The position numbers and the translations under genes are program-made. Below are positions 38,452 through 55,330 of a DNA stretch of 64,000 bases, in pieces. Each line of letters starts with the position of its first letter. Within the stretch, counting starts at the first letter, position 1. The notes below the pieces were generated by a model that saw nothing but the letters and a program-made list of their open reading frames with translations, was not told the origin of the DNA and searched no databases. The DNA lies in IMG/VR virus record IMGVR_UViG_3300047994_000374, positions 62,001 to 126,000 of that record; one strand, given 5' to 3'.

Positions 38452-38871
38452 TCATAAAAATGCCTTTAATATTTTTAATCGTTCATAGGTTTGCATGGCG
38501 TATTCTAACAAATTAATTTCAGACCAAATGGGAAATTTCCAAGGAACGCGATCTAAATCCTTTAAAAAGAAAGCGGACCCTCCAAGATGCTTTGTAATTG
38601 CAAATGATGTGATGGTTTCTTTTATTTTATCTGATAAATGATACCTAAAAGATAAATACTTATTGGTTTTTGGAACGGCGATGTGAATGACTGCGCTTGA
38701 AACACGATCTCGACTCTGCCATGGTATTGCGTATTCTACCCTCACTTTATAGGCAGATGTGTTATTGTCAATCATACAATTGGCACAAAATGCAAATGAA
38801 GATATATAATTTTTTGTTAATTTAAGGGGTCCATTACAAAAAATACAGGGCTTTGTTAAAAATATATCCAT
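38452..38871 (-). CDS. Zn-finger/xxFL family protein
   Basis: CIFC...CANC; ends LKAFL. Confidence 0.75.
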   Translation of the reverse strand: MDIFLTKPCIFCNGPLKLTKNYISSFAFCANCMIDNNTSAYKVRVEYAIPWQSRDRVSSAVIHIAVPKTNKYLSFRYHLSDKIKETITSFAITKHLGGSAFFLKDLDRVPWKFPIWSEINLLEYAMQTYERLKILKAFL

Positions 38872-39003
38872 AGAGATCTTTCAAGTATAATGATGAAAGT
38901 AACAAAATCAAGCGTGGCGATTATTTTTGCATATTTATTATTGTCGAAAGCACTTTATTTACTAATTGAGGTAAGTGTAAGTTGCCAGCAATAAAGAGGA
39001 AAT

Positions 39004-39687
39004 ATGGGCAAATTTTTAAGATTAATAGGGCTTTTCATGGTAGTATGTTTGGCTTCAGGGTGCGGCACTTCACTTTACAGCTATCGACAAGGTTCAGTCC
39101 CTGCTCATGTTAATCATCCTCGAAACATTGCAATTTGGCTTGATGCCCGTTTTACTCCTGCCCAAGATAAAGAGTTAGAAGATGCAATTGATGAATGGAA
39201 CGGTGTATTTAATGGTCAAATCATACTCAAGCTTCAAACGAAAGATGCCTATTATACGGATGAAAAAGGTAAATTACACGCTATCAAAGAGCTTGTAACT
39301 TTTCGAACCACTGAAGAAGCAAAAGATTTAATTACAAATAGCGAAAAATCTGACTTGGGATGGGTTATTATGGACATCCCAGATGATGATCCAATGCTTC
39401 AAGGCTCTGATGTTGAAGGTGTTTTGGCTTTCGTGCCAGGATTTAATGAGCACTATGGCGTTTTTCTAATGGAGCATTTTGGTGACCGATCTCTACGTGA
39501 CGTGGCTCTTCATGAATTTGGACATCTTTTAGGGGCGCCACATATTAGCGCGCCTTCTTTAATGAACCCAACATACGGGTATAATCAACTTACATGTATT
39601 GATAAGGTTACGGTTCTTGAAGTAGCTAATTATTGGCACATCGATCCATCTACTTTAAATTATTGTTCAACGCCATTTTACCCATAA
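39004..39687 (+). CDS. Lipoprotein metzincin (matrixin-like) metalloprotease
   Basis: Lipobox LASGC; HEFGHLLGAPH plus LMNP; GAGG upstream. Confidence 0.85.
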   Translation: MGKFLRLIGLFMVVCLASGCGTSLYSYRQGSVPAHVNHPRNIAIWLDARFTPAQDKELEDAIDEWNGVFNGQIILKLQTKDAYYTDEKGKLHAIKELVTFRTTEEAKDLITNSEKSDLGWVIMDIPDDDPMLQGSDVEGVLAFVPGFNEHYGVFLMEHFGDRSLRDVALHEFGHLLGAPHISAPSLMNPTYGYNQLTCIDKVTVLEVANYWHIDPSTLNYCSTPFYP

Positions 39688-39688
39688 C

Positions 39689-40297
39689 ATGAAGAAATCT
39701 TTTATATTTATATGCTTCTTATTTGTTATAAGTGCATTTGGATGTGGTGCTCAACCTCCCGGCTACTATTGGGCTGTCACTACTCCCGCGAACAATGTGG
39801 GAAGAGTTATTCCTATTTGGGTTGATAACAATTTTAGCGAGCAAGATAAACTTACACTATCTGACGCTATCAATCAATGGAATTATGTTCTTAATGGTCA
39901 AATCACTTTAGACATTGTTGATACGCACTTTGATATGGAAGATAATAAAATCAAAGAGGCGGGCAACAAAGGTGGGTGGCTATTCTTAAAGATTGATCAT
40001 AACAATCCATTCATACCCTCAACCGGTCCAGATTTGGTTACACTGGCTTTTGCTGATCAAATCGGGGGACATACCATATTTTTTGTTCAGGATGTTATGG
40101 GTCAAAATAGACTGCCTGGGGTGGCGCTTCATGAGATCGGACATTTACTGGGAGCAGAGCATGATAGCAGTGGATTGATGTTCCCACGTTATTCGGCTCA
40201 TGGATTCTCTTGTGTGGATGAATTGGCAATGAAAGAGGTGGCAGAGTTCTTTCATTTGGATGCTTCAAGAATGAATTATTGCGTTAACCTTCAATAA
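39689..40297 (+). CDS. Lipoprotein metzincin metalloprotease, tandem paralog
   Basis: Lipobox AFGC; HEIGHLLGAEH plus LMFP. Confidence 0.85.
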   Translation: MKKSFIFICFLFVISAFGCGAQPPGYYWAVTTPANNVGRVIPIWVDNNFSEQDKLTLSDAINQWNYVLNGQITLDIVDTHFDMEDNKIKEAGNKGGWLFLKIDHNNPFIPSTGPDLVTLAFADQIGGHTIFFVQDVMGQNRLPGVALHEIGHLLGAEHDSSGLMFPRYSAHGFSCVDELAMKEVAEFFHLDASRMNYCVNLQ

Positions 40298-40659
40298 AAA
40301 TTAATAAGTTTTTCTAAACGATCTTGATGAGCCTTTGCTTCTGTCATCCAGTTATTCGGATTTGCAGATAGCGGCATATAATCTTTAACTCTAATAAGTT
40401 CTTCCAAAGTCATTGCATTTAAAATGGTTGAATGGCGCACATAAACTAATGGTCCAGAAGAATCATCACCCATATCAGATAGAAAATTATATTTGTTATT
40501 CATAAGGCGATAAAAAAACGGCAAGCCATTTTCATTAACCATAAATGTTGATCCGTTATATTCACATCCCCAATTGTGTGTAAATATCATTCGATCAAAA
40601 TTTATTTTTTTATTTAAAGCCATACTGCATGACGGACAAATAATATCGAAATCAATCAT
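40291..40659 (-). CDS. Zn-finger/xxF family protein
   Basis: CPSC; ends LINFY. Confidence 0.7.
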   Translation of the reverse strand: MIDFDIICPSCSMALNKKINFDRMIFTHNWGCEYNGSTFMVNENGLPFFYRLMNNKYNFLSDMGDDSSGPLVYVRHSTILNAMTLEELIRVKDYMPLSANPNNWMTEAKAHQDRLEKLINFY

Positions 40660-41015
40660 AAAAATGTCAATAGTATTTCTAATTTAGATTTAATATTTTG
40701 AGGCGTCATAGTGTATCTAACATCTTCAAATCGTTTTAGTAATTGCAAATCCTTATTAATCTGAACGCCTGGAATACCCGGAATCTTAACTTCATACAAA
40801 TGTACGACATCTCCTAAAAGTTTTGACCAACGATACATTTTATTATGAATGGAGATGTAAAGCGATACGACGGCAGGTTTACTTTGATTGCGGAAAAATA
40901 CATATTCCGCTTGATATGGATCGCAAAAATAAACCCTCGCATTATACGTGTCCATTTCTGGGAGCGGTTTATATTCAGCATTTTCTTCACAAAACTTACA
41001 TGGAGCTATCATCAT
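40656..41015 (-). CDS. Zn-finger/xxF family protein
   Basis: CKFC; ends LLTFL. Confidence 0.75.
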   Translation of the reverse strand: MMIAPCKFCEENAEYKPLPEMDTYNARVYFCDPYQAEYVFFRNQSKPAVVSLYISIHNKMYRWSKLLGDVVHLYEVKIPGIPGVQINKDLQLLKRFEDVRYTMTPQNIKSKLEILLTFL

Positions 41016-41401
41016 GAGAAGGCGATAAGTATATTTACCTTCCTTTTGAGTTCTTCTAATATTGGGAAGTCTGGGGAAATCATTTTAGGTAAATCAATGT
41101 ATTGTGGCGGTCCATGAGGTTCCAAAATAATGATACGAGACTTATTATTTACATAATCAATTTCGATAAATTTATTATGAGTAGTATCGCTTTTATTTAT
41201 GGAAATTTTTATCATATCAATTTTATTAGTGGCGCTATCAATAAGCAAATGAATATAATGATCTTCTTCTGAAATACAACCCCTATCAATATAATCTGAC
41301 ATCTTTTTAATTAGATAAACATAACGAGTAAATGGTCTATAGCTTTTTAATCGGCTGGAACAAATAGGGCAAAACAAACAATCATCCATCCCTTTATACA
41401 A
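41012..41401 (-). CDS. Zn-finger/xxF family protein
   Basis: CPIC...C...DH; ends LIAFS. Confidence 0.75.
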   Translation of the reverse strand: MYKGMDDCLFCPICSSRLKSYRPFTRYVYLIKKMSDYIDRGCISEEDHYIHLLIDSATNKIDMIKISINKSDTTHNKFIEIDYVNNKSRIIILEPHGPPQYIDLPKMISPDFPILEELKRKVNILIAFS

Positions 41402-41402
41402 A

Positions 41403-41741
41403 TTAAGAGAAGGTTATTAATTTATTAAGCTTATTTAAGAACTTCTTGTAGTCTTTTAATCTTTCAGTAGTTACTTCGATATATGGTAAAACAACATGAT
41501 TACTCGGCTCAAGTAATAATAATGTTTTAAACTCTGTATCAAATTGAAAAACGCGCTTGGGATTATTCGAATGCAAATTAACCACAGTGACATGTTTATT
41601 GTTGGTATGTGAGACGCACTCAAACACATGATCGAGACGCAAATTGCATGTTTGCGTTAATAGCTCTGACCCATCAATAAACTCCATAAAATCATTGACA
41701 AGCGGGGAATTACAGCAGGGGCAATTTATTGGTGTTCTCAA
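41403..41741 (-). CDS. Zn-finger/xxF family protein
   Basis: CPCC...C...DH; ends LITFS. Confidence 0.75.
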   Translation of the reverse strand: MRTPINCPCCNSPLVNDFMEFIDGSELLTQTCNLRLDHVFECVSHTNNKHVTVVNLHSNNPKRVFQFDTEFKTLLLLEPSNHVVLPYIEVTTERLKDYKKFLNKLNKLITFS

Positions 41742-41750
41742 CCAGTTCCT

Positions 41751-42422
41751 TCAAGAGAATAACAAAATCTTTCGAAGCTTATCTACGAGAGTTTGTTTGC
41801 TCTTAAAGCTATATAACGGAAGAATTGAGAGTTCGATTTTCGTTGGGGCGAGAGGGCTTGTTTTATCAATGCGATCGGCAAATAGGATGGATTTATTGGT
41901 ATTGAAGTCCGTCTCAATTTGATAGAGAGTTGTGCTGTCGTTTATTAAAAGGCGCTCGGATTTTAAAGCAATTAACTCTATGATGCCTTTATTGAAGTTA
42001 AATTTTAAAGGATGAGTTGATATCTCGCAACAACAATAATGACAATAAGAACGAAGAGTTAAATATTTTTCATTGCCTTGTAGATATTTTTTTAAGAAGT
42101 CTTCATTGTTGGTGCGTATTTTTTGAGTTAGATAATTGACTTCTAAATAAATAAATTCTGAATAGCCCATTTTAAGCTCAAAGGAAACCTCATTGGGAGT
42201 TGAGGTACCGGAACGGGAATGGACAGGGATACCAAAGGAATTGCGATAGTTTAGATCAATACTAACACTGCGCTGACAATTAAAGCAGGGGTTATTATAG
42301 GAGACGAAATCTTTAATTGTGAAGGATTTGGGCACATAGAAATGCCAGTTTAAGAGTGCCAAAAATAATTTTGATATAAATGACGATTTTTTGGGGCAGC
42401 GAGTGGGCAGCGGATTACTCAA
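41751..42422 (-). CDS. Long Zn-finger/xxF family protein
   Basis: CFNC...CHYC; ends ILLFS. Confidence 0.7.
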   Translation of the reverse strand: MSNPLPTRCPKKSSFISKLFLALLNWHFYVPKSFTIKDFVSYNNPCFNCQRSVSIDLNYRNSFGIPVHSRSGTSTPNEVSFELKMGYSEFIYLEVNYLTQKIRTNNEDFLKKYLQGNEKYLTLRSYCHYCCCEISTHPLKFNFNKGIIELIALKSERLLINDSTTLYQIETDFNTNKSILFADRIDKTSPLAPTKIELSILPLYSFKSKQTLVDKLRKILLFS

Positions 42423-42491
42423 CTACATGATTTTATTAACCAGTTCACGCTTCATTGAGAGTTTTAACAATAAAATCAAATAGTTACGTGG

Positions 42492-42520
42492 TTGACAGTA
42501 TTAAAAACGAGAACTACATT
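42492..42520 (+). promoter_or_regulatory. Sigma70-type promoter
   Basis: TTGACA-17-TACATT. Confidence 0.6.
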
Positions 42521-42574
42521 GACCAATATCGACGAAGCACATTTCACCAAACAAACAAGAAAGAGCAGTACATT

Positions 42575-42748
42575 ATGAAGAAGACAATAACGATTAAGTA
42601 TGAATTTACATCTGGACAAAATATGTCAGGATACAGTAACGCAGGAAAAGCCTCAGAATCCGATGAGTTTGCCAAGTTAGAAGAGCAATTTGAAGAGCTT
42701 GCCAAGAGATTCAATGTAACAAAAGTAGTTATGAAGAAGGTCGACTGA
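42575..42748 (+). CDS. Small hypothetical protein
   Basis: ORF 42455-42748; ATG start MKKTITI lies downstream of the promoter. Confidence 0.5.
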   Translation: MKKTITIKYEFTSGQNMSGYSNAGKASESDEFAKLEEQFEELAKRFNVTKVVMKKVD

Positions 42749-42994
42749 TTAAATAGCCCATCGAGCGATTACTATCAAACGATGGGCGCCAATTCCCATT
42801 TATCAATAAAATAGTGTAGCAAAATGCAGCAGTTAAATTTAAGCAAAACAATTAATCAAGGAAACGACAATGGAAAACGAAACTTTTTATGTTGCAGATG
42901 ATGGCGAAATCATTATTAAAACGGGAAATTATGTATGGTCTGATGGCAGCATTCATAATGAACGTGAAGAATTTAAACTGGATAAGGAAGAATT

Positions 42995-43777
42995 ATGAAG
43001 ATATGCTCACAATGCAGGTTTGAAGGGGAAAACAATCTATTTCCTCGTGGCAACAGATGTATTACTTGTCATAAGGCCTATCACAGTGCTTATAAAAAAG
43101 ATTGGCGAAATAAAAATAAAGATAAAATATTTACATATAATAAGCAATATGTGAAAGATCATCCTGAACAAACTAAAGCTATCCAGAAACGTAGTCGAAA
43201 TAAAAATAAAGAAAAGTATAAACCATATAAGAAAACATATAATAAAAAATATATAGAAGAGCATAAAGAAGATCTTGCTATTTCTAATAAAATTTGGCGC
43301 GAGAACAATAAAGAGCACTTAAAAATAGAAAAGAAAAAAGATTATGAACGCAACAAAGAGCACTATCAGCAATTAGCTATTATTAACTATGAAAATAATA
43401 AAGAAGAAATAAACAAGAAAAAGTATCAGCGTAAAAAGAAACGATTGAAAAATGATCCCGCTTTTCGCTGTATGCAAAATGCATCTAGACATGCCAATTT
43501 AATGCTGCATAGTCAAGGTGGAAGTAAAATGGGAAACTCCTTTTCTAAGCGACTTGGCTATTCTTCTATTGAATTTAAAAAACATATAGAAAATCAATTT
43601 ACTCCTGAAATGAGCTGGGATAACTATGGTACTTATTGGCATCTCGATCATATCATTCCCCATTCCCATACACCTTATGATTCAATGGAGCATCCTAATT
43701 TCTTAAAGGCTTGGGCACTTTCAAATCTTCGTCCACTAGAGGCTCATCAAAATATGAGTGAAGGTAATCGTCGATAA
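42995..43777 (+). CDS. HNH-family endonuclease with Lys-rich repeats
   Basis: MSWDNYGTYWHLDHIIP...LSNLRPL...N. Confidence 0.8.
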   Translation: MKICSQCRFEGENNLFPRGNRCITCHKAYHSAYKKDWRNKNKDKIFTYNKQYVKDHPEQTKAIQKRSRNKNKEKYKPYKKTYNKKYIEEHKEDLAISNKIWRENNKEHLKIEKKKDYERNKEHYQQLAIINYENNKEEINKKKYQRKKKRLKNDPAFRCMQNASRHANLMLHSQGGSKMGNSFSKRLGYSSIEFKKHIENQFTPEMSWDNYGTYWHLDHIIPHSHTPYDSMEHPNFLKAWALSNLRPLEAHQNMSEGNRR

Positions 43778-43779
43778 AT

Positions 43780-44859
43780 TTAATTGACGTGTTTCCAAGT
43801 CCTGCCAGATATAACATCCATTATAGTTACTTTCGACACTCCAAATATTTTTGCCATTTCTTTTGCTGTTTTACCTTCAGAATCTAATTCTCTTATTTGC
43901 TTAACAGATTCTTCATTCAATATTTTACTTGGATCTTTTCGTTTTTCAAAAATCATATCAGGAAATATATGTTTCCATGTTTTGCTATTTTGGATATCAT
44001 ATATGGTAGTTTCTGATACTTGATATAATTCGGCAAGTTTAGACGTTGATTGTAAATCTTCATGCAACGCTAATTTTATTTCAATAACCTTATCTTCATT
44101 TAAAAAATCTATATTGTGTCGTCTTTGTTTTGGAATTATTTCATTTGGCAAAATATGCGTCCACATTCGTCCTGTACGAATATCATTAATAGTTTTGCGA
44201 TGAACGCCATATTGCTTTCCTATTTCTGTATCTGACAAATCTGTATTAATAAAAAGTCTTTTTATTTCAGTAACTTTCTCTTCATTTAATTTGGCTTGTG
44301 GATTTTTACTTCCAGTTTTATTTTCTTTATCTTTTTCTTTTGCACTATCTGGTCTCACTTTTCCTCTTCCCGCCTTACTTAAAGCTTTACAATGTTCTGG
44401 ACTTAATATTTTACCCATATGCGCTTCACTTAATGAAGCTTTGTGTTCCTCTGATTTTGGAACACCACTTGATGCCATACTCATTTTTAATTTAGACTCT
44501 TCTGAATGTAAATGCCCGCACGCGCCTTCACCTCCATCAGTTAAATTATACCCATATCTATCTCCGTATTTACATATATTTGATTTATATTCTTTTATCC
44601 AAAACTGCTCTCTATCGAGGATGATAAGTTCATCTTTATTAGATTCTAAAATTTTAAATTCGAAATTGTTTAACCCATATTTATTAATGGCTTTGTGCAC
44701 AACAAATGAATTTTTATCAATTATACGGGATTGTCTTTTATGACTGTTCCATCGAGATTTTGGATTATTTGTTTTCCCAATATACACCTTGTTGTTTAAT
44801 AAGTTCTTAATTATATAGATATAAAACATTGACGATCCTTTTCGATCGTCATATATCAA
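43780..44859 (-). CDS. GIY-YIG homing endonuclease with NUMOD3 and HTH repeats
   Basis: YIYIIKN...VYIGKT...R...H; GYNLTDGGEG; HSEESKLKMS repeats; three C-terminal HTH-like repeats. Confidence 0.9.
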   Translation of the reverse strand: MIYDDRKGSSMFYIYIIKNLLNNKVYIGKTNNPKSRWNSHKRQSRIIDKNSFVVHKAINKYGLNNFEFKILESNKDELIILDREQFWIKEYKSNICKYGDRYGYNLTDGGEGACGHLHSEESKLKMSMASSGVPKSEEHKASLSEAHMGKILSPEHCKALSKAGRGKVRPDSAKEKDKENKTGSKNPQAKLNEEKVTEIKRLFINTDLSDTEIGKQYGVHRKTINDIRTGRMWTHILPNEIIPKQRRHNIDFLNEDKVIEIKLALHEDLQSTSKLAELYQVSETTIYDIQNSKTWKHIFPDMIFEKRKDPSKILNEESVKQIRELDSEGKTAKEMAKIFGVSKVTIMDVISGRTWKHVN

Positions 44860-44873
44860 GAGAAATTAAATAT

Positions 44874-45962
44874 TTACGCTGACTTGATTTTTCTTAGCAT
44901 TGCTATTAAAAATTCCTGAACATCTCCATCAAGAACCTTATGAAAATCTCTCACAGTATAATCTGTGCGATGGTCTTTTACTATTTGTTGCGGCTCAAGG
45001 AAGTACGACCGTATTTGTGCACCAAATGATGCGCTTGATTGAACGGATAATTTGGCGTCAATCAACTCTTGTTTCTTTTTCATCTCAATATCATAAAGTT
45101 TTGACTTCAACATTTTAAGAGCATTTGCTTTATTTTGATGATAATCCCTCTCTGCACTTACGATAAAACTAATGCCAGAGGGAAAGTGTTTTATTCTACA
45201 TGCCGACGCGACGCGATTTTGATTCTGACCCCCAGAACCTGTACGAGTTTGTCCAATCATTTCAACATCTTTGTCGTCAATCTTAATGTCAATTGTATCT
45301 TCAATATCCGCAGAAACTTGGACCGCAGCGAAGCTTGTTTGCCTTGCATTACCTGCATTGAAGGGGCTATTGCGGATTAACCTCATTACGCCATTTTCAC
45401 CCTTCAAAAATCCATAAGCATACTTCCCCTCGATTCGTATTGACACATTATCAATACAAATCGAACTATGCTCTTCACTATCTTTACGATCCAACAACTC
45501 TACCTTAAACCCTTGAGCAGCAGCATATCGACAATACATTCGATACAGCATACTTACCCAATTACATGCTTCCGCCCCACCCGCTCCAGCACTTATAGTC
45601 AAAATAGCAGGAGCATCATCAGTTGGCTCACAAAGCATCAACTCAAATTCAATCGTCTCCATTCGCCCCAGAATGCCTTTTAACACGCTTTCAATCTCAC
45701 CCTCACTGCCTTCTCCCTCTGAAAGCAAAAGCTCGTTAAAAGCTATTGTATCCCTAAACTCAAGCATCCCTGCAACGAGACCTGCCAGCTTCTCTCGTTC
45801 CTTCATTAATGGGATAGCTTTCGCTGAGTTATGCCAGAAATCAATCTTCTCTGCCGCAGCATCAATTTCCTCAATACGACGCTGATGAAATGTAACTGGA
45901 ATGAGCTTCTCCAGAACGATCATTTTCTCTTGGCATTGTTCTAATAATTGATGTGCGCTCAT
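44874..45962 (-). CDS. prfB: Peptide chain release factor 2
   Basis: GAGG.EA..W..ML.RMY; SPF specificity tripeptide; GGQ; QIRSY. Confidence 0.92.
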   Translation of the reverse strand: MSAHQLLEQCQEKMIVLEKLIPVTFHQRRIEEIDAAAEKIDFWHNSAKAIPLMKEREKLAGLVAGMLEFRDTIAFNELLLSEGEGSEGEIESVLKGILGRMETIEFELMLCEPTDDAPAILTISAGAGGAEACNWVSMLYRMYCRYAAAQGFKVELLDRKDSEEHSSICIDNVSIRIEGKYAYGFLKGENGVMRLIRNSPFNAGNARQTSFAAVQVSADIEDTIDIKIDDKDVEMIGQTRTGSGGQNQNRVASACRIKHFPSGISFIVSAERDYHQNKANALKMLKSKLYDIEMKKKQELIDAKLSVQSSASFGAQIRSYFLEPQQIVKDHRTDYTVRDFHKVLDGDVQEFLIAMLRKIKSA

Positions 45963-45971
45963 GATTTTACT

Positions 45972-46574
45972 TTAACCGAATGTTGTTAGGATTTCACATT
46001 TCTTGATGATGCTTTTATATTCAATGGGAAATTCCGGGAAATCTAAATTATATGTAATAGGCGTTCCCCAATTTTTTCTATAGGTAATAGCTCTTGAATT
46101 TGCATCTTTAATCAAATATGCTACATTACCATTTCCTTCACTTACCATCAACTCTTCTTGCAATAAATTTAAGAAGCATACATATCCTGTCGTTAAGTCA
46201 ATGGACATCCGAAATATTTGTTTATAGTGACTGCTTAGGCAAAAATACTGGAACTCTACATTTTGATACGGCGAGTATTCATTTGATAGTGTTCCGGGTG
46301 AGATATAATTCCATGCACAGTTCGCATCAAAACTCGCGGCTATTGAATAAGACTCAATGAAATTATTATAGACATTTGTTTTAAGATGCAGTTTGAATTC
46401 TTTAGTGTTTGATAAATTTTGTAATCGTGAATAGGTATAAAATTCTAATGGAATAGTAAATTCTATACTAGATCCATTCAATTGAAAAGAAAGTGATGAT
46501 ACAAGTTCTTGATTGCAGACCGGGCAAAATTGATGGCTTTGAACTAAAGCTGCTAATGTATTGGGCGGAATCAT
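45972..46574 (-). CDS. Long Zn-finger/xxF family protein
   Basis: CPVC; ends LTTFG. Confidence 0.65.
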   Translation of the reverse strand: MIPPNTLAALVQSHQFCPVCNQELVSSLSFQLNGSSIEFTIPLEFYTYSRLQNLSNTKEFKLHLKTNVYNNFIESYSIAASFDANCAWNYISPGTLSNEYSPYQNVEFQYFCLSSHYKQIFRMSIDLTTGYVCFLNLLQEELMVSEGNGNVAYLIKDANSRAITYRKNWGTPITYNLDFPEFPIEYKSIIKKCEILTTFG

Positions 46575-47233: not shown

Positions 47234-47767
47234 TTGAATTCGTATAATTTCATGCACCAAATGAGTGACGAAGACTATTTAAGACTTCTGGAACAACTTA
47301 CAAGCCAGCAATACGGTGATTTTGATGATGAAATTCTTCCCGATTTAGAGGATATTGCTTGGACGCCAGAACCCGAAGCAAAGACAAGGGTTAATGCAAA
47401 TAGCAACAAGTGCATTGATCTAACCAAAGAGTCCAAATTTAAAATCAAAGATAAGTTATTTGAGGCAACGAATTTTAAGGTAGGAGCATTCTTTATTCGA
47501 ATTAAGAAGTATCGTGGAACTATTGATAACTATAAATCATCTTTATATATGGACATCTCTTTGTATGAAGAAAAGTTAAAAACTCCCAATGGCAAAGAGT
47601 GTAAGATTATGTGCGCTTTCAATCCTGTTAGAGATGGGCGTTTTTCAAAGTGTGATTGGATAACTTACTTTAAAATTCCTTCATGTGGCTTTGATGTGCC
47701 AACTGAAGAAGTAATTAACATTATTAAGTGGATGCAGTTCGTTAATAAAAATCCTGCGTTTATTTAA
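47234..47767 (+). CDS. Hypothetical protein (ends NPAFI)
   Basis: 177-aa ORF. Confidence 0.7.
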   Translation: MNSYNFMHQMSDEDYLRLLEQLTSQQYGDFDDEILPDLEDIAWTPEPEAKTRVNANSNKCIDLTKESKFKIKDKLFEATNFKVGAFFIRIKKYRGTIDNYKSSLYMDISLYEEKLKTPNGKECKIMCAFNPVRDGRFSKCDWITYFKIPSCGFDVPTEEVINIIKWMQFVNKNPAFI

Positions 47768-48090
47768 GAAAAAGTTCTCATCATTTGAAACTTATTGATA
47801 AGAGCTTCTTCGCCTTTGCCCTTATTATCTTTTATAAATTGTATTGGATTTAATTTAATTCTAAATTCTTCCTTATTATTGCCGTACATTTCTAAATACT
47901 CAAGCTCTTTATTAAAAAATAAAGTTGTCAAAAATTGACCAATGTTAATATAAGTGTGAATTACTAGCCCTTTTGAATTAGTAAAAATTCTGAAATGACC
48001 TTTTGAACATTCGCGAGATGCAATGGGTTCATTACACACAAAGCATTTATAATCAAGAAGTTTTAAAAATCTTTGCATACTTATTTTCAT
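47764..48090 (-). CDS. Zn-finger/xxF family protein
   Basis: CFVC...CSKGH; ends MRTFS. Confidence 0.7.
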   Translation of the reverse strand: MKISMQRFLKLLDYKCFVCNEPIASRECSKGHFRIFTNSKGLVIHTYINIGQFLTTLFFNKELEYLEMYGNNKEEFRIKLNPIQFIKDNKGKGEEALINKFQMMRTFS

Positions 48091-48158
48091 GTTAGTGTTT
48101 TTAAAATAATTAGTTAAATTTTTGTGTCAAGTTTTATATAGCTCGATATATACTATGC

Positions 48159-49505: not shown

Positions 49506-49522
49506 AAATTTAGAGAATTTAA

Positions 49523-50362
49523 TCAACGAACATCGTCACAACAACGAGTCCCAGTCTCGTAAAATTTAAACCCAATGCTTTCATGGCTAACCGTTTCTAC
49601 TCGACTGCGATTTCTAGATCCGATTGCCCAATGTCCTCCTTTCAGTCCTGATACATAAGGATGATGACTTGAATTTACTACCCACTCGTCTGCATTGCCA
49701 GCCATGTCACTGATACCAAAGTCGCTTTTACAAGATGTCATAGATCCTGATGAAACCCTCTGATCAACTACTCTAAATGAATTCTTCCAAGGATCAACCC
49801 ACGGCTTATCAATATTACACACTGTGTTGTCCCTATGAAATCCATCTCCATAAGGATAGGGCTTCATCAATTCGCCCTCTGCAGCAAAGGTCCATTCATA
49901 ATCTTTACACAATCGTTTGCCTTCACCTTCGCAAGACTGTTTCGCTTCGGTCCATGTCATTTCAACTTTGGGCAACTCTCCTTTAACATTGGGAAATTCA
50001 TAAGTGTCCATACAAAAATGCATAAACTTTTTTTCTTTTGAAAGGCATTTGGTTGGGGCGAACTCTGCACATCGAACTGGACCTTCGCCACCATTTGCTT
50101 TCGCAGATTGGTCTTTGTCAAGCCAACGAAGACATTTATTAATTACGCTCGGACAATACATTCCCTGAACTTCAACCATATCATTGGGACATTTATTAGT
50201 CGCCGTATTATTTGTTGAAGATGCCATAGCAAATACTTCTCCATCGTTTGTTTGCAATAGAGTTCGTTGCCCCTGTTCCGGTTGAGCGGGGGACGAAGAA
50301 GAGCTGTTGGTGCAAGAAATAATTATTAGAGAAATAAAAATGAGGAGTAGAAATTGTTTCAT
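49523..50362 (-). CDS. FGE-sulfatase (SUMF1/EgtB/PvdO) domain lipoprotein
   Basis: Lipobox-like IISC; CPNDMV; FCMDTYE; GKRLC...EW; DMAGNADEW; GTRCC; box 24 nt upstream. Confidence 0.85.
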   Translation of the reverse strand: MKQFLLLIFISLIIISCTNSSSSSPAQPEQGQRTLLQTNDGEVFAMASSTNNTATNKCPNDMVEVQGMYCPSVINKCLRWLDKDQSAKANGGEGPVRCAEFAPTKCLSKEKKFMHFCMDTYEFPNVKGELPKVEMTWTEAKQSCEGEGKRLCKDYEWTFAAEGELMKPYPYGDGFHRDNTVCNIDKPWVDPWKNSFRVVDQRVSSGSMTSCKSDFGISDMAGNADEWVVNSSHHPYVSGLKGGHWAIGSRNRSRVETVSHESIGFKFYETGTRCCDDVR

Positions 50363-50490
50363 AACTATCTAATTTATACATGTGAAATGGGAAATCAATG
50401 CCATTAATAAAAAAGAACCCACCTGATCTGATGAGTTCTTTTAAGATTATATTAAGATTATCCCGCTTACAATACCGTGATAATAAGTTT

Positions 50491-51114
50491 TTATTTGGCG
50501 CTTTTAATGACTTGTAATACTTGTGGCAGTGTGTAATTGCCTGGAACATTGTATTTCTTTTTAAATGCTTCGATCGCACTTTTTGTTCTATCGCCTAATA
50601 GTCCATCAACTTTAAGTGGCATAATTTCGCCGGATGGAACCAATAAAGTATTTAATTTATCTTGGACGGTTTTATCAATAGTAGGAAGTCCAGCTGGTTT
50701 AGTGGTGGAAGGCTGAGTAAATGAGCCCGGTGATGCTGGTAGAGTTGCCGTAGTTTGCTCTTGATCTTGAAGAAGTTTTTGTAATTTAATTGTTAAGTCT
50801 AGCGCCTGATTGATTTGTGGTCCATGTCCTTCGGGGAATTGATTGGTTGCCGTATGGATCGTTTGAATAAGATCATCTAAATCTACTGTATCATTGTGAA
50901 GGGCGTCCATTATTTTATTCTGGAGTTCTGTGCTATTTGGATCGAGGGCATCGACATTTTTGAGAACGCTTTCAAGATCGGCTCGGACATCTGGGGTCAA
51001 TTTATCGGCTGAAACCATATTTGACGCAAGTGCTTTTAAGAATGAGGTTCGGTTGGAATAGAGTGCTAATTTTTCAAAACCGTTTACTTTTTTGAGTAAT
51101 GATGCGTATTTCAT
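50491..51114 (-). CDS. Protein with C-terminal peptidoglycan-binding domain
   Basis: VQDKLN...LKVDGLLGDRTKSAIEAFK. Confidence 0.75.
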   Translation of the reverse strand: MKYASLLKKVNGFEKLALYSNRTSFLKALASNMVSADKLTPDVRADLESVLKNVDALDPNSTELQNKIMDALHNDTVDLDDLIQTIHTATNQFPEGHGPQINQALDLTIKLQKLLQDQEQTTATLPASPGSFTQPSTTKPAGLPTIDKTVQDKLNTLLVPSGEIMPLKVDGLLGDRTKSAIEAFKKKYNVPGNYTLPQVLQVIKSAK

Positions 51115-51156
51115 TGATTTCCTTGGTTTGATTGCCCTATACTATATATCGAAATA

Positions 51157-51705
51157 TTACGAAGTTCTATTCTTAAAATCGGTATTACTATATTCATTTT
51201 CTTGATTAGCATAGTTTGGATTGCAATCACATCTGCAGCTATTATGACAGGTCCCACAAATACGAAGTCCCGAAAAGGTCCTACACTCATCACAGCGAAA
51301 GGGCCCGGAGCAACGACATCCGCACATATAGGCTGGTAAATTCATTCCACATCCCATATCCTTTGCCGCTCTTAAAACCTCATAAACATCAATATACTGG
51401 ATGTCCCAAGCTTGACCGGGAGGACCAAATTTGGACTGCTCGACATAGGCCATACCGCCACTTAAAAACAGAACAACATCCGCTAAATTCCTATTCGTTA
51501 AATCTGTATAATCAGGAAGAACAACCATAATTCGGAGCCCTTGCAAATGAACTATTGATGGATAATTTGGATCCGCTGCAACCCTGGCATCAAACTCGAT
51601 CTTTGATATCGCTTCATTAATAAAGAATTGCAACTGAAGATTGGCTTGAAGCTCTGCGTTCATTCCATCAGCATTCACGAACAAAATAACAGATGGTAAA
51701 TTCAT
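51157..51705 (-). CDS. Hypothetical protein with Cys-rich C-terminus
   Basis: 182-aa ORF. Confidence 0.7.
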   Translation of the reverse strand: MNLPSVILFVNADGMNAELQANLQLQFFINEAISKIEFDARVAADPNYPSIVHLQGLRIMVVLPDYTDLTNRNLADVVLFLSGGMAYVEQSKFGPPGQAWDIQYIDVYEVLRAAKDMGCGMNLPAYMCGCRCSGPFRCDECRTFSGLRICGTCHNSCRCDCNPNYANQENEYSNTDFKNRTS

Positions 51706-52571
51706 TTTACTAATTCCTTGTAAAAATTAAAAACTTTACAATATTCATCATATGTTGCATCACCTTTTAAGCTATTTGCCTTCCATGATATTACTCTTAC
51801 ATTTCCCTTTACATAGCCATTATTGTTATTAATTTTGTCGAGGGAAGGTGAATTTGTCTCTCTATCCCTATTATTAATACTTAGTGATATATTTAAAACT
51901 GGGCAAATTTTTGGAATTACGATATCTACTTTTTCTATATTGAATGGTATTTTTTTTAATTTTGCTCTTTCAGTTGCATGATAAAACATTTTATTTATTC
52001 TATTTTTATTATCATATATTTGATCTGTTTTTGTAATAATTTTATCCCAATTAATTAATATTTGACTCATTTCATCTATCGTTGCGTTTGCTTTAATATT
52101 ATTTGCGCGCCACGAAACTATAACTATATTTTCTTTAGTATATCCCTTCGTGTTGTCAATTCTATCTACAGATGGAGATGATGCTTTTTGATATCCATTA
52201 TCTGATATTTTTAATTCACTTCCAAAAATAGGGCAAAATTTCGGAATAATCAGATCACTAATATCAATTTTATGTTCGAAACCTTTTGCTTTCGCATTTG
52301 CCATAGTAGTTTTAAAAAAATATTTTGGAACATTTTGCTTGATTACATCATCATAGTAATTTTGCCTTATATCTTGTCCCTGGTCACTTTTAAAATATAC
52401 ATTACTGCGATTTTTTACACACTCTTTGCATTCACTATTTAGTCCATTACAATTTCTTTTATTAGAATAATAATCATAACTTAACTTTATAATTTTACAT
52501 TTAACGCATGGCTTTTCAATACCATCTTGTCTCTCATAAAAAAATCTTTGAATTCCCATAATAATATGCAA
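51702..52571 (-). CDS. HNH-like homing endonuclease with duplicated nuclease domain
   Basis: Two IPxxCP...SPSxDxIxNxxGYxKxNxxxxSWxAN units. Confidence 0.8.
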   Translation of the reverse strand: MHIIMGIQRFFYERQDGIEKPCVKCKIIKLSYDYYSNKRNCNGLNSECKECVKNRSNVYFKSDQGQDIRQNYYDDVIKQNVPKYFFKTTMANAKAKGFEHKIDISDLIIPKFCPIFGSELKISDNGYQKASSPSVDRIDNTKGYTKENIVIVSWRANNIKANATIDEMSQILINWDKIITKTDQIYDNKNRINKMFYHATERAKLKKIPFNIEKVDIVIPKICPVLNISLSINNRDRETNSPSLDKINNNNGYVKGNVRVISWKANSLKGDATYDEYCKVFNFYKELVK

Positions 52572-52584
52572 AAAATATAGCCCC

Positions 52585-52612
52585 TTGACAATTCGTAATC
52601 GATATTTACATT
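52585..52612 (+). promoter_or_regulatory. Sigma70-type promoter (probably giving a leaderless dut transcript)
   Basis: TTGACA-16-TACATT, with 6 nt between it and ATG 52619. Confidence 0.5.
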
Positions 52613-52618
52613 GGACGC

Positions 52619-53113
52619 ATGATTGAACTTCCTACCTATCAATTTGCCCTTAGAGATGATGTAAAAGATGATCTGCGCTTTTTACCTACAAAGGGTGAGC
52701 CAAACGCAACGGGATATGATGTAAAAGCTGCACCGAAAGACAGGCAACCCATTATCCTTCATCCGGGTTGGTATGCAAAAATTCCGCTTGGATTTCGCGC
52801 TTTTATACCAGAAGGATGGTGGATGGAATTAAGACCTCGATCTTCTTCATTCGCTAAAAAATCCATGCATACTTTATATGGAGTGATTGACCAAGATTTT
52901 TCTTTGGAAAATTTATATGCGTGTCAATATTTGCCCGTAGATATGTCATTCCACAATACATTGACAATAGAATTTGGCGAATCAATTGGTCAAATGGTTC
53001 CAATTAAACGACAAGAAATGATTGTTGAATCTGTTTCAAATGAAGAGATTGAGCAGCTTTATAAAAAACGAAATGCTGTAAGAAATGGCGGATTCGGATC
53101 AACCGGAGCCTAA
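52619..53113 (+). CDS. dut: dUTPase (trimeric)
   Basis: ATGYDV, RPRSS, GVIDQD, RNGGFGSTG. Confidence 0.9.
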   Translation: MIELPTYQFALRDDVKDDLRFLPTKGEPNATGYDVKAAPKDRQPIILHPGWYAKIPLGFRAFIPEGWWMELRPRSSSFAKKSMHTLYGVIDQDFSLENLYACQYLPVDMSFHNTLTIEFGESIGQMVPIKRQEMIVESVSNEEIEQLYKKRNAVRNGGFGSTGA

Positions 53114-53452
53114 ATGAATTTTACTGATGAGCAAATAAGTAAATGGATTAAATTAACTGAAAATGGTGTTAATAAATTTTATACTACTTCTACTTTGCCA
53201 TTTAAAAGTAAATTAGTAGAAGCAAGAATGATGATAGATAGGCATGGATCTTTTGTAAGTGATATATTTTTCAACCCATTATTAAAAGAATATGTCGAGA
53301 AGGAATTAAATTGCCGCGATACAATTTGGGGATCTGACATTCATTATACAAATGCATGTTCTTTAGAGATTGGGCTATTAATATCTAATTGTAAATTATT
53401 TAAAGTGGATAGTACAGATACTAAATATATAACCACTTTTTCGGTAAAATAA
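53114..53452 (+). CDS. Hypothetical protein
   Basis: ORF track, abuts neighbours. Confidence 0.65.
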   Translation: MNFTDEQISKWIKLTENGVNKFYTTSTLPFKSKLVEARMMIDRHGSFVSDIFFNPLLKEYVEKELNCRDTIWGSDIHYTNACSLEIGLLISNCKLFKVDSTDTKYITTFSVK

Positions 53453-54259
53453 ATGAAAAATACATCACATATAAAATCGCATCGAAATAATCATAACGGA
53501 GATCATACTCTGCCCAATAAAAAGGAAGAGGCTCCAACTTTCGGTCAAACACAGAACCATGATACTTATGGCAGCGGCTTGGGCTGGTCTATTAAAGAAA
53601 AAGAAAAATTAACAGGTATTTGCTATTCAGAAGATGATCATATGCCCAATGATATCCGCATAGGCATTGAAACAATTTACGGTCCAACAGATGTCGATGT
53701 TACAACAGATAGCGTTTGGAATATCTATAAAAAAGAAGAGCCTTGGATTCAAACAAATTCGGGAAAAAGATTTCAGCCACTTAATCCAACTCAAGAATCC
53801 ATTGACATTGAAGATATTGCTCACGCTCTTTCTATGATATGTAGATTCAATGGTCATGTTTCGGAATTCTACTCAGTGGGGCAGCACTGCGTATTAGTTA
53901 GTTATGCGTGTGATTCAGACGACGCTGCATTCGGTCTTCTTCATGATGCAAGTGAGGCATACATCTCAGATTTCAGTAGCCCGCTAAAACACTCTGGACA
54001 ATTTGAAAACTATAAAATCATGGAAGATATTATTCAAACTGCCATATATAAAAAATTTGGTTTAGTAGGAAAAGAACCTCCATCAGTAAAGCGTGCTGAC
54101 AAACAATTGCTTTACACTGAAGCGCGAGATTTGATGTCGCCACTTCATCCTGATTGGGTAAATGCCGTTGATCCTTTACCATGGAAAATTGAAGCTTGGG
54201 ATCAAAAGAAATCAAAGGCTGAATTTTTAAAACGCTTCTATGAATTGTTTAGAGAATAA
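53453..54259 (+). CDS. HD-domain 5'-deoxynucleotidase (YfdR/YfbR-like)
   Basis: IEDIAHALSMICRFNGH..FYSVGQH...LLHDASEAY.SD. Confidence 0.85.
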   Translation: MKNTSHIKSHRNNHNGDHTLPNKKEEAPTFGQTQNHDTYGSGLGWSIKEKEKLTGICYSEDDHMPNDIRIGIETIYGPTDVDVTTDSVWNIYKKEEPWIQTNSGKRFQPLNPTQESIDIEDIAHALSMICRFNGHVSEFYSVGQHCVLVSYACDSDDAAFGLLHDASEAYISDFSSPLKHSGQFENYKIMEDIIQTAIYKKFGLVGKEPPSVKRADKQLLYTEARDLMSPLHPDWVNAVDPLPWKIEAWDQKKSKAEFLKRFYELFRE

Positions 54260-54351
54260 ATAATGAATCCATTTGATATTATCATGGGTATGTTGTTTTT
54301 ATTTATTATCATTATGTTTATAGCGGGAATGTTTTGGCGAAAGGATAAAAA

Positions 54352-54684
54352 ATGAACGACGATAATAACACAAAATCAATTGAAGAGCTTGAGGAAGAAG
54401 AGCGCTTACGAAAAGCCGCTGCCGAAAAGAAGAAACAAGACGAGCTTAAAAAATTAGCCTCTTTACCGAAACCTAAGTTCTCGTTCGATGTCAAAATCGA
54501 TAGCATGATCCCTGCAACATTAACTTTTAGAGTGATTGCGGAAACTCCAGAGCAAGCAGCAGAACTTGTCAAAAATATGCAACCGACTGGAGTGAAATAT
54601 AAACTGGCTAGTCGAAAAGATTCAAAGATTACAGTCTTAGATGCCGGATCATCTATCATAAAATGGTTTAAAAAGCTATATTAA
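54352..54684 (+). CDS. Hypothetical protein
   Basis: ORF track; AAGGA upstream. Confidence 0.7.
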   Translation: MNDDNNTKSIEELEEEERLRKAAAEKKKQDELKKLASLPKPKFSFDVKIDSMIPATLTFRVIAETPEQAAELVKNMQPTGVKYKLASRKDSKITVLDAGSSIIKWFKKLY

Positions 54685-54685
54685 T

Positions 54686-55177
54686 ATGAGCAACTATAAG
54701 CAATACCTTAAAACAAAATCCACAAAAACTGGCAAAGGAGTTTTTACTACAGTTAAAATTCCAGCTAACATGCCTATTATCGAAATGAAGGGCGATATCT
54801 TTATTGATAAGCCAGGACATCTCGATCACGCACAAGTCCTTCAAGTCGGACCCAATACATTCTTAGGTCCAAGTGGCGAAGTGGATGATTATATTAACCA
54901 TTCTTGCGATCCCAATTGTTATATGCATGTAGTTGGCAATAGGGCAATTCTTTATTCTTTATATGTAATTCCAGCCAATTCAGAACTTACATTTGATTAC
55001 TCACTCACTGCCAATAATGAAAAAGAAGATTGGACCATGGCTTGTAATTGTGGTTCAAACAAATGTAGAAAAGAAATAAGTGGCTTTCAACATTTGAGTC
55101 CGGAGCTACAGGATGAGTATAAGAAAAAGAAAATGGTTCCGCTTTACCTTACTTCTACGATGATCATGAAAAAATGA
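54686..55177 (+). CDS. SET-domain protein lysine methyltransferase with post-SET
   Basis: GKGVF; YINHSCDPN; ELTFDY; CNCGSNKCR. Confidence 0.9.
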   Translation: MSNYKQYLKTKSTKTGKGVFTTVKIPANMPIIEMKGDIFIDKPGHLDHAQVLQVGPNTFLGPSGEVDDYINHSCDPNCYMHVVGNRAILYSLYVIPANSELTFDYSLTANNEKEDWTMACNCGSNKCRKEISGFQHLSPELQDEYKKKKMVPLYLTSTMIMKK

Positions 55178-55330
55178 AAGCATTATAGTAATGAATAAAA
55201 ATGATCTTAAAATTCAAGTACAAAGATATACGGATCTCAAAATAGTGCGAATGCTTTGGATTGATGGTAAGTGGATTGCATTTACAGAAGAAGAATATGA
55301 AAGATATCAAAAATTGAAAGCGTTCCAATA

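Follow-up and report, generated by a model that had tools for sequence, protein, structure and literature searches.

A C-terminal tail shared by many small proteins of an uncultivated 394-kb phage that resembles a common address or docking tag

About one sixth of the proteins of the uncultivated phage examined here, from many unrelated small-protein families, end in the same nine-residue tail, with a phenylalanine placed exactly one residue from the end. The tail, with consensus [KR]-h-x-K-[LIM]-K-A-F-x, was followed up from a 64,000-nucleotide stretch of the genome (the window; positions 62,001 to 126,000 of IMG/VR record IMGVR_UViG_3300047994_000374), and all coordinates in the list below refer to this window. 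A preliminary description of the window had proposed that a C-terminal tail with a penultimate Phe recurs outside a tandem array of Zn-finger genes and on unrelated proteins, and had read it as a candidate portable sorting or docking signal. The observation is confirmed and its extent is much larger than was first seen; the interpretation is supported only in part, since the tail behaves as a portable, protein-level element but none of the functions proposed for it (capsid loading, a phage compartment, a protease adaptor or a clamp-like hub) was shown. The features of the window that bear on these results are as follows.

30031..37604 (-), tandem array of about 24 Zn-finger (CPxC) genes of about 100 aa, nearly all ending in the tail; its first gene, 37368-37604, has lost the finger but keeps the tail.
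34163..34258 (-), orphaned tail-coding piece of the truncated gene 34248-34571; the intact ortholog is on the sequence L021 at 2003-2395.
35845..35964 (-), orphaned tail-coding piece of a broken array gene, the 5' part of which is 35873-36160 in another frame; the intact ortholog is on L021 at 418-732.
38452..38871 (-), dispersed Zn-finger member, 139 aa, tail ..KILKAFL, ATGA overlap with the next ORF; 20.7 bits.
40291..40659 (-), dispersed Zn-finger member, tail ..KLINFY, no ATGA overlap and no downstream coupled gene; 14.6 bits.
40656..41015 (-), dispersed CxxC member, tail ..ILLTFL, ATGA overlap; 12.2 bits.
41012..41401 (-), dispersed CxxC member, tail ..ILIAFS, ATGA overlap; 12.8 bits.
41403..41741 (-), dispersed Zn-finger member, tail ..KLITFS, stop TAA, no overlap; 14.6 bits.
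41751..42422 (-), 223-aa protein with several Cys pairs, probably a two-unit fusion, with a weaker tail ..KILLFS, no ATGA overlap; 8.7 bits.
45972..46574 (-), 200-aa CxxC protein next to the RF2 gene, tail ..EILTTFG, stop TAA, no ATGA overlap; 9.9 bits; the syntenic genes in the relative L026 carry similar degenerate ..Y-x-x-F-S tails.
47234..47767 (+), 177-aa protein ending ..NKNPAFI, not a member; 4.7 bits.
47764..48090 (-), 108-aa CxxC protein, tail ..MMRTFS, stop TAA, no overlap; 12.3 bits.
55191..55331 (+), 46-aa ORF without a finger, tail ..YQKLKAFQ, the minimal member of a MORN-like repeat family (a beta-hairpin plus the tail helix); 21.4 bits.

The bit scores were obtained by scoring the last 10 residues of each protein with a position-specific matrix (PSSM). 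All ten ORFs named in the preliminary description exist and end as it had described, and its remark that several of them have no ATGA overlap is also correct. Of its two examples of tailed proteins without the finger, however, only 55191-55331 is a true member. The other, 47234-47767, matches the motif only in 'AF', scores in the valley of a clearly bimodal distribution (background mode about -14, motif mode +8 to +24) and has no ortholog in a 448-kb relative (hereafter G001); hence, it is best read as a chance penultimate Phe.

In our gene call of the whole 394,192-bp genome (hereafter G000), 96 of 554 proteins have Phe at position -2, against an overall Phe frequency of 4.5%. Scores of 10 bits or more were found at 91 ORF C-termini but in only 11 of 110,244 internal windows, and the motif was absent from other frames. 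Lack of enrichment outside the Zn-finger family had been set in advance as grounds for rejecting the idea, but the enrichment persisted: outside the Zn-finger profile family, Phe at -2 was found in 58 of 515 proteins (11.3%, binomial p = 2.6e-10), and in 41 of 468 (p = 4.9e-5) after also removing every protein with any CxxC in its first 45 residues, while motif-negative proteins were at background (17 of 472, 3.6%). The register relative to the free C-terminus is strict. That is, exactly one residue follows the Phe in 82-92 proteins of G000 and in 84-103 proteins of G001, which was not used to build the matrix, while every other offset has 0-4 proteins. G001 carries about 100 such tails, mostly on proteins without the finger.

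Selection acts on the protein rather than on the nucleic acid, since codons are fully mixed at every conserved position: Phe is coded 42 times by TTT and 42 times by TTC, Ala by all four GCN codons, Leu by five codons and K/R by six. The last codon ends in A in about 60 of 86 members because of the ATGA overlap, but 24 of 86 members have no overlap, and a DNA- or RNA-level signal (junction, promoter or recombination linker) or chance is thus effectively refuted. Further, tails of genes with no close downstream gene score as high as those of coupled genes (15.0 vs. 16.1, p = 0.32).

The tail is also portable. With the last 14 residues removed, 196 tailed proteins of the two phages fall into a Zn family (67 proteins), a MORN-like family (16) and about 100 small groups or singletons, and hhalign comparison of the Zn and MORN-like profiles aligns only the 14 terminal columns (E = 3.9e-5). 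Conservation is found all around the helix ([KR] at -9 in 86%, K at -6 in 67%, A at -3 in 61% and F at -2 in 98%), even in the 113 proteins that belong to neither large family, where nothing upstream of -11 is conserved. The Zn family combines an N-terminal CPxC...C..H zinc ribbon, a beta-meander body of about 100 aa and a C-terminal helix ending A-F-x; its alignment (A1) shows invariant C3 and C6 and near-invariant C22, Y37 and F102. The array genes, 40291 and 41403 are recruited by the profile with the tail removed, whereas 38452, 40656, 41012, 41751, 45972 and 47764 have the CxxC and the tail but are too diverged for it. Among metagenomic relatives, about 100 clusters of the Zn family all stop at the profile's end (124 library hits do so), and 118 of 125 have Phe at -2. 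The second family is of the PF20530 (DUF6745) type, with the repeated beta-hairpin motif HR-x-DGPA...W-[YF]-x-NG, and includes G000 37516, 40431 and 55495 and about 13 G001 genes; 55191-55331 keeps only the last hairpin plus the tail and aligns with them, so its membership rests mainly on that segment. This repeat family has 1390 relatives, of which only 18 of the best 120 carry the tail, and the cultured jumbo phages PA5oct and Atu_ph07 have the repeats without the tail.

AlphaFold models of both families show the same layout, i.e., beta-strands followed by a single helix running almost to the end of the protein. The predicted helix spans residues 86-101 of 103 in the Zn member (pLDDT 92-94) and residues 88-100 of 101 in the MORN-like member, where it is the most confident part.

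Taken together, the analysis establishes that the tail is selected at the protein level, that it sits on about one sixth of the proteins of this phage and of its 448-kb relative and on families that share nothing else detectable, and that it is locked in register with the free C-terminus. What the tail does, including any binding, degradation, packaging or membrane association, is inferred. We tentatively favor, at somewhat less than even likelihood, the hypothesis that the tail is a portable docking module of 9-14 residues, the last turns of an amphipathic, Lys/Arg-flanked helix ending in small-Phe-X-COOH, that is read by one shared partner, although no receptor was identified. In this view, one face of the helix packs on the protein's own beta-sheet, while the conserved basic face, the small residue at -3, the invariant Phe at -2 and the terminal carboxylate are presented to the partner; the Phe would insert into a pocket and the carboxylate would be clamped, which would explain why the last side chain is free to vary while nothing may follow it, and which is the logic of ssrA-type C-degrons, HbYX tails and C-terminal PIP boxes. 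The bodies, small and fast-diverging beta-meander proteins, many with a Zn ribbon and coded in turnover-prone arrays, would be variable binders of host or phage targets, and the tail their shared handle. The leading candidate for the receptor is the proteolysis/chaperone machinery, given that both phages encode two bona fide ClpP (E about 1e-46), a DnaJ, a trigger factor, a YjoB-like AAA+ and an AAA+/DUF2201 pair. The tail would then either time the removal of these proteins or tether them, with bound targets, to the protease, but this last step is conjecture and we consider it unlikely on present evidence; no ClpX-type unfoldase or Lon was found in G000, and no tmRNA in the phage. It is also important to note that, between close orthologs, the tail is only slightly more conserved than the body (90% vs. 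82%, n = 6 pairs), and that tailed genes overlap the next start three times more often than other small genes (62% vs. 20%), so a link to translation or to array duplication is not excluded. No cultured relative exists.

The main alternative, which the preliminary description did not consider and which we regard as less likely but serious, is that the tail is purely structural: a C-terminal capping helix of small single-layer beta-meander or beta-hairpin-repeat proteins, with Phe(-2), Leu(-5) and the hydrophobic residue at -8 forming a mini-core, such that all tailed proteins are hyper-diverged descendants (or recombinants) of one beta-sheet-plus-helix domain and nothing reads the tail. The high confidence with which the helix is integrated into the predicted fold means that the Phe may simply be core, and consistent with this are weak polo-box-like (beta6-alpha) matches, the conservation in the Zn family of aromatic residues in the sheet (F28, Y37) together with F102, and the other C-terminal end-pieces carried by PF20530 relatives without the tail, as expected for alternative caps. 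However, a structural helix should conserve its pattern rather than its identity, whereas here solvent-side Lys/Arg at -9, -6 and -4 and a small residue at -3 are conserved in more than 100 sequence-unrelated groups while the strands they would pack on keep no identity. Moreover, the stop codon is held exactly one residue after the Phe in about 190 proteins of 46-350 aa, and the last residue is free (L, I, T, S, W, A, Q, G, E), which is odd for a core cap.

The remaining readings appear unlikely to varying degrees. A virion-loading signal that binds scaffold or capsid interior, so that the small proteins are packed and co-injected as an anti-defence arsenal, is a special case of docking; it would be the mirror image of the N-terminal capsid targeting sequence of T4 internal proteins, whose loci likewise encode hypervariable small proteins that share only a short terminal peptide, and would fit the small size (mostly 65-125 aa) and elongated model of the proteins and the gain, loss and breakage of array genes between close relatives. 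Yet the arrays lie far from the structural module (about 165-300 kb in the genome), sigma-70-like hexamers sit just upstream of array-first genes (although the scan as a whole is not above shuffles), and a hundred different cargo species would be unprecedented. Slightly less likely still is a membrane-targeting amphipathic helix of the MinD/FtsA kind, a short basic-hydrophobic C-terminal helix that would park the proteins on the inner membrane; K-[LIM]-K-[AS]-F-h resembles the C-terminal membrane-targeting sequence of MinD, and there is a narrow hydrophobic face at -12, -8, -5 and -1 flanked by Lys/Arg, but such helices are unstructured off the membrane and tolerate shifts in register and trailing residues, whereas here the register is fixed, the helix is modelled as packed on the protein, and the invariance of one Phe and of Ala(-3) is more than lipid binding needs. 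A nascent-chain element, in which the last 10-14 residues would act inside the ribosomal tunnel at the stop codon to tune termination or re-initiation at the overlapping start of the next gene also appears very unlikely. The strict register to the stop codon is what arrest or regulatory peptides show, the array junctions lack Shine-Dalgarno-like sequence, and the phage encodes RF2, IF1, IF3 and trigger factor; but tails are just as strong without a downstream partner, both TGA (63) and TAA (23) are used, the same residues are modelled as part of the folded protein, and the overlap excess could be explained by tandem duplication.

Short terminal tags that route many unrelated proteins to one machine, such as ssrA, PTS1, signal peptides, encapsulin cargo peptides and the T4 capsid targeting sequence, are a basic organizing principle of cells, but nothing of this scale is known to have been described for phage proteomes. 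It is intriguing, although doubtful on present evidence, that the tail might represent a proteome-scale address system in huge phages, in which one sixth of the genes, from many unrelated and fast-evolving families, would be plugged into a single phage- or host-encoded machine, either as interchangeable adaptors bringing different host (defence) proteins to the phage's own ClpP1/ClpP2 protease or as cargo loaded for co-injection. A second huge-phage lineage uses a sister tail (..E-F-L-L-T-F-x), which suggests that the principle is widespread. If the tail is such a tag, it provides a handle to fish out the receptor, labels about 100 ORFans per genome as one functional class (probably host-takeover or anti-defence binders built on a common scaffold), and offers a ready-made 10-14-residue tag for engineering. 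If it is only a capping helix, it still defines a large new family of mini-proteins with a conserved scaffold and hypervariable surface.

Several known systems share elements of this arrangement. A lineage-specific expansion of small Zn-ribbon proteins in a jumbo phage is found in Bacillus phage G (about 35 copies; PMC7824862), but no shared C-terminal tail was reported there, and our sequences had no match to GenBank phages. The C-terminal degrons and tethers of bacterial AAA+ proteases (the ssrA tag, the MuA-type motif and the ClpX-binding tail of SspB) are likewise anchored to the free C-terminus, non-polar at the end, often basic just upstream and movable between proteins; however, they end in -LAA, -KKAI or -RVVK rather than -A-F-x, and known degrons are unstructured, whereas this tail closes a helix that is predicted to be packed. 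The HbYX motif of proteasome activators, which docks into 20S alpha pockets, has an invariant penultimate aromatic residue, a free last residue and a strict C-terminal position, implying a pocket plus a carboxylate clamp, but the residue is Tyr, which is rare here, and the motif sits on the ring ATPase or activator rather than on clients, while the carriers here are small non-ATPase proteins; the resemblance is one of logic only. For C-terminal PIP boxes and clamp-binding tails (Q-x-x-[LIM]-x-x-[FY]-[FYLW], or QL[SD]LF for the beta clamp), the spacing h(-5)..F(-2)-h(-1) with basic flanks equals positions 4, 7 and 8 of the box placed at the very end, but position -8 is L/Y/I/F instead of Gln, searches with PF00712, PF02916 and PF00705 gave no hit to a PCNA, gp45-like or beta clamp in G000, and a hundred clamp clients make little sense. 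PDZ ligands (h-x-h or S/T-x-h) depend on a hydrophobic last residue, whereas here the last residue is variable and the penultimate one invariant, and no PDZ domain was found in G000 and only a sub-threshold hit in G001. In the T4-type internal proteins (IPI/II/III loci), a short terminal peptide, the capsid targeting sequence, is the only thing shared by small, hypervariable, clustered phage proteins thought to fight host defences, although that signal is N-terminal, is cleaved by the prohead protease and sits on a handful of proteins, while the present one is C-terminal, shows no cleavage evidence and sits on about 100 proteins. Finally, and as an analogy of architecture only, since the PRANC element is a roughly 50-aa F-box-like domain that binds Skp1 in eukaryotes, the poxvirus ankyrin/PRANC and other viral adaptor families are also large paralogous families that combine a variable target-binding body with a conserved C-terminal hub-binding element.

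The genome that holds the window (hereafter G000) is a single 394,192-bp contig in an IMG/VR virus record, 36% G+C and 92% complete by CheckV, and represents a huge tailed phage to which no GenBank phage is close; the window is bases 62,001-126,000 of this contig. The whole genome was analyzed as twenty loci (L001-L020), and a simple codon-usage gene call gave 554 genes covering 90% of the sequence; while this gene call is our own and crude, C-termini depend only on stop codons and, hence, start-codon errors do not affect the counts reported below. The encoded functions include a tail sheath, an intein-bearing large terminase, a split major head protein, DnaE-type polymerase III alpha, topoisomerase and ribonucleotide reductase, as well as genes for translation and proteostasis, i.e., RF2, IF1, IF3, trigger factor, DnaJ and two ClpP. 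The genome is also rich in selfish elements; besides the inserts listed here, GIY-YIG (43780-44859) and HNH-like genes are nearby. The features of the genomic background are as follows (strand is given only where it was recorded).

Window 44874-45962: RF2 gene.
Window 56622-56846: IF1 gene.
Window 56855-59041: IMP dehydrogenase / GMP reductase-like gene with a large intein-like insert, recognized by eye rather than by a scan against a family library.
Genome 280071-283031: large terminase gene carrying a LAGLIDADG homing-endonuclease or intein insert (Pfam).
Genome 254947-257149 (L013: 14947-17149), outside the window: major head protein gene in two pieces, of 77 aa (matching profile positions 9-69 of phrog_2522) and 171 aa (matching positions 162-317), with about 1.45 kb between them; the same split occurs in a 447,763-bp relative (G001, below), which suggests an intron or homing element in the capsid gene.
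Genome 333703-333777 (L017: 13703-13777): tRNA with anticodon CTA (amber-suppressor type).
Genome 327782-328901: ClpP1 and ClpP2 genes.
Window 39004-40297, 3679-4320 and 27056-27643: several paralogous lipoprotein-like zinc metalloproteases (lipobox Cys, HExxGH), scattered through the window.
Window 1-26000 (genome 57-88 kb), e.g., at window 25134, 24000, 23557 and 16502: the motif TTCCCATT(T/C)A about 32 nt before the ATG of some 35 consecutive small minus-strand genes, in the higher-G+C (40-44%) part of the window; it looks like a phage-specific promoter or leader class and is not found in front of the tailed arrays.

The preliminary description held that a C-terminal tail with a penultimate Phe recurs outside the zinc-finger gene array and on unrelated proteins, and this observation was confirmed: every ORF it named is present and ends as it had described. 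Genome-wide, the penultimate residue is Phe in 96 of 554 proteins, compared to 19-30 at neighboring positions and an overall Phe frequency of 4.5%. We scored the last ten residues with a position-specific matrix, the consensus of which is [KR]-h-x-K-[LIM]-K-A-F-x (h denotes a hydrophobic residue). The resulting score distribution is bimodal, with the background near -14 bits, a second mode at +8 to +24 bits that holds 82 called genes, and an almost empty valley between the two. At 10 bits or more there are 75 called genes plus 16 further minus-strand ORFs that our gene call had missed, whereas only 11 of 110,244 internal windows of the same proteins reach that score. Sliding the matrix over the last 25 residues showed that exactly one residue follows the Phe in 82-92 proteins, while every other offset has 0-4. 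It is important to note that the matrix was trained on G000 and, therefore, the counts for this genome are partly circular; the internal-window control, the bimodality and the independent genome G001 guard against this circularity.

Codon usage among 86 members shows that selection acts on the peptide, as the preliminary description had inferred. Specifically, Phe(-2) is encoded 42 times by TTT and 42 times by TTC, Ala(-3) by GCA (20), GCT (19), GCG (10) and GCC (4), Leu(-5) by five codons (besides Ile and Met at this position), and K/R(-9) by six codons, and a DNA-level motif was rejected on the basis of these mixed synonymous codons. Only the last codon is constrained; it ends in A in about 60 of 86 members because 51 genes overlap the next start as ATGA and 11 as GTGA or TTGA. 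Twenty-four members have no overlap and 23 stop with TAA. Dependence on stop/start coupling was also rejected, since the tails of genes without a close downstream gene score as high as the others (15.0 vs. 16.1 bits, p = 0.32). Tailed genes do overlap the next start three times more often than other small genes (62% vs. 20%), which we attribute mainly to their origin by tandem duplication. A scan for promoters gave 98 sigma-70-like sites against 93 expected and is, thus, no evidence by itself.

The enrichment extends beyond the Zn-finger family; its absence there had been named beforehand as one outcome that would overturn the idea. Excluding the profile-defined Zn family, Phe is penultimate in 58 of 515 proteins (p = 2.6e-10), and excluding also every protein with any CxxC in its first 45 residues, in 41 of 468 (p = 4.9e-5), with 28 motif-positive proteins, whereas motif-negative proteins are at background (17/472). 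Of the two finger-less examples named in the preliminary description, the ORF at window 55191-55331 (21.4 bits) is a true member, while the one at 47234-47767 (4.7 bits, only 'AF' matching, no ortholog in G001) is best taken as one of the roughly 17 chance cases.

To assess how broadly the tail occurs, we searched 1.84 billion representative proteins with a profile of 28 Zn-family members and found 124 proteins. Eighteen of the 125 sequences retrieved are identical to G000's own proteins; nearly all are 90-120 aa, nearly all end where the profile ends, and 118 of 125 have Phe at -2. One lies on the 447,763-bp IMG/VR genome G001 (31% G+C), the RF2 of which is 48% identical to that of the window. 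G001 occurs in rhizosphere samples (JGI 3300009545 and 3300025914). G001, which was not used to build the matrix, has 101 ORF C-termini at 10 bits or more, about 70% of which lack an N-terminal CxxC. A search with a back-translated junction pattern found only the two records of the relative, and no GenBank phage matched the Zn family. Small metagenome contigs (L023 and L025) show finger-less tailed genes beside fingered ones. A close relative of the window's array on another metagenome contig (L021, orthologs about 82% identical) shows gene gain and loss and differs in gene content from the window's array, revealing rapid birth and death of members; between orthologs, tail identity was 90% compared to 82% for the body, although the pairs are too few to mean much. 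Remnants and rearranged members are also found in G000:

Window 35845-36160 and 34163-34571: two broken array genes, one by a frameshift and one by a premature stop, with intact orthologs on L021 at 418-732 and 2003-2395.
Window 38345-38455: 36-aa ORF that keeps only the N-terminal zinc ribbon of the family and has no tail, probably a truncated remnant.
Genome 40431-40919 (L003: 431-919): 162-aa ORF, a head-to-tail fusion of two MORN-like units; the first unit's tail (..MKLKAFF) is internal and still perfect and is followed by L-I-M, as if a stop had been lost recently.

With the last 14 residues removed, iterative profile searches grouped 196 tailed proteins of the two phages into one Zn family of 67, one family of 16 built from 'HRxDGPA / WYxNG' beta-hairpin repeats (MORN-like, PF20530 type), and about 100 small groups or singletons. 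Profile-profile comparison of the Zn family (alignment A1) with the repeat family (alignment A2) aligned only the last 14 columns, end to end (E = 3.9e-5). The repeat family is widespread, with 1390 hits, yet only 18 of the best 120 carry the tail and the rest end in other ways; in the cultured jumbo phages PA5oct and Atu_ph07 the repeats occur without the tail, and their neighbors lack it too. So the tail has been joined to a family that exists without it, which is the strongest evidence for portability. 'Unrelated' here means undetectable by profile methods, not proven non-homologous, and both modelled families share a beta-hairpins-plus-helix layout. In the 113 proteins that belong to neither large family, conservation is confined to positions -9 to -1, with a weak hydrophobic preference at -11, and the residue preferences are the same as in the Zn family. 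Searches of 30 tailed proteins against Pfam and PHROGs gave nothing above cut-off. Further, many PF20530 relatives from another huge-phage lineage (ENA GROS21 scaffolds, 33% G+C) end in a sister motif, ..E-F-[LM]-L-[TM]-F-x. On one 20-kb stretch of this lineage (scaffold L063), about 10 of 35 neighboring genes carry such a tail (..E-F-L-L-T-F-x), again with Phe one residue from the end. The ..L-I-T-F-S sub-type of G000 resembles it, the common core being [LIM]-x-[A/T]-F-x at the free end.

With the paralogs as alignment, AlphaFold2 modelled a Zn member at pLDDT 88, predicting a zinc-ribbon start, six strands in a meander, and then one helix at residues 86-101 of 103 (pLDDT 92-94), with the final Phe-Leu just past the helix. 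The repeat-family member is modelled poorly overall (pLDDT 63), and its last hairpins and the helix at residues 88-100 of 101 are the confident part (76-86). No solved or predicted fold matches the Zn-member model convincingly: the best Foldseek hit in PDB was a polo box (E = 0.16), a wide VIA-align search of PDB gave a best Z of 5.8, and ESM Atlas gave TM of 0.54 or less, the best hits being polo-box-like beta6-alpha arrangements and single-layer sheets. ESM Atlas look-alikes for two other tailed proteins yielded nothing usable. So the tail closes a helix that, in these models, very likely lies on the protein's own sheet. On a helical wheel, the hydrophobic stripe is inferred to be at -12, -8, -5 and -1, with the conserved Lys/Arg at -9 and -6 and Phe(-2) on the neighboring flank and Ala(-3) opposite.

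Several possible readers of the tail were evaluated. G000 has no detectable sliding clamp (PF00712, PF02916 and PF00705 gave no hit), and searches for ClpX, Lon and PDZ proteins returned only weak AAA_2 hits to MoxR-like ATPases, a sub-threshold Lon hit inside the terminase gene, and a sub-threshold PDZ hit in G001 only. Mimicry of a phage tmRNA tag was likewise rejected, as ARAGORN found no tmRNA but five tRNAs, including the one with anticodon CTA. This tRNA occurs together with the phage RF2 gene and TAG accounts for only 18 of 554 stops, yet reading TAG through barely lengthens ORFs; there is no sign of genome-wide recoding, and TAG recoding could not serve to class genes as early or late. 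In contrast, the phage does bring two bona fide ClpP, a DnaJ, a trigger factor, a YjoB-like AAA+, and a conserved gene pair encoding an AAA+ ATPase and a DUF2201 (putative metallopeptidase plus VWA-like) protein. This pair lies directly beside tailed genes in three huge-phage genomes, as follows; the proximity may be coincidence given how common tailed genes are, but the pair is a receptor candidate.

Genome 361164-364077 (G000): AAA+/DUF2201 pair.
G001 181765-184632: AAA+/DUF2201 pair.
L063 3208-5929: AAA+/DUF2201 pair in the sister lineage.

The preliminary description's interpretation was only partly supported. Selection on the peptide, its fixed distance from the free C-terminus, and its presence on families that profile methods cannot relate are results of the present analysis, whereas that anything binds the tail, and any effect of the tail on protein stability, localization or packaging, or any pattern of expression, is inferred from sequence and predicted structure alone. 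The main rival to a docking role is that the helix is only a structural cap; we consider this somewhat less likely than docking, but AlphaFold's confident packing supports it and we could not exclude it based on the models. Among putative receptors, we rank a Clp-centered role first, either as a built-in degron or as an adaptor tether, although this version is itself improbable, and no individual candidate (the ClpP pocket, the DUF2201/VWA protein, DnaJ, or the N-domain of the YjoB-like AAA+) appeared to be more than a remote possibility. Virion loading comes next and is unlikely, a membrane helix and a nascent-chain or termination element are less likely still, and a DNA-level signal is practically ruled out.

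Three facts point beyond a purely structural cap: the identity-level conservation of solvent-side basic residues and of a small residue in more than 100 otherwise unrelated groups, an invariant penultimate aromatic residue with a free last residue, and a stop codon held exactly one residue later in proteins of 46-350 aa. Therefore, we tentatively favor, at somewhat less than even confidence, the hypothesis that the tail is a docking tag shared by many small, fast-evolving, putative binder proteins and read by an as yet unidentified receptor. This comparison rests on analogy, in that the combination of the three facts is the signature of motifs that are read together with the terminal carboxylate, such as ssrA-type degrons, HbYX tails and C-terminal PIP boxes.
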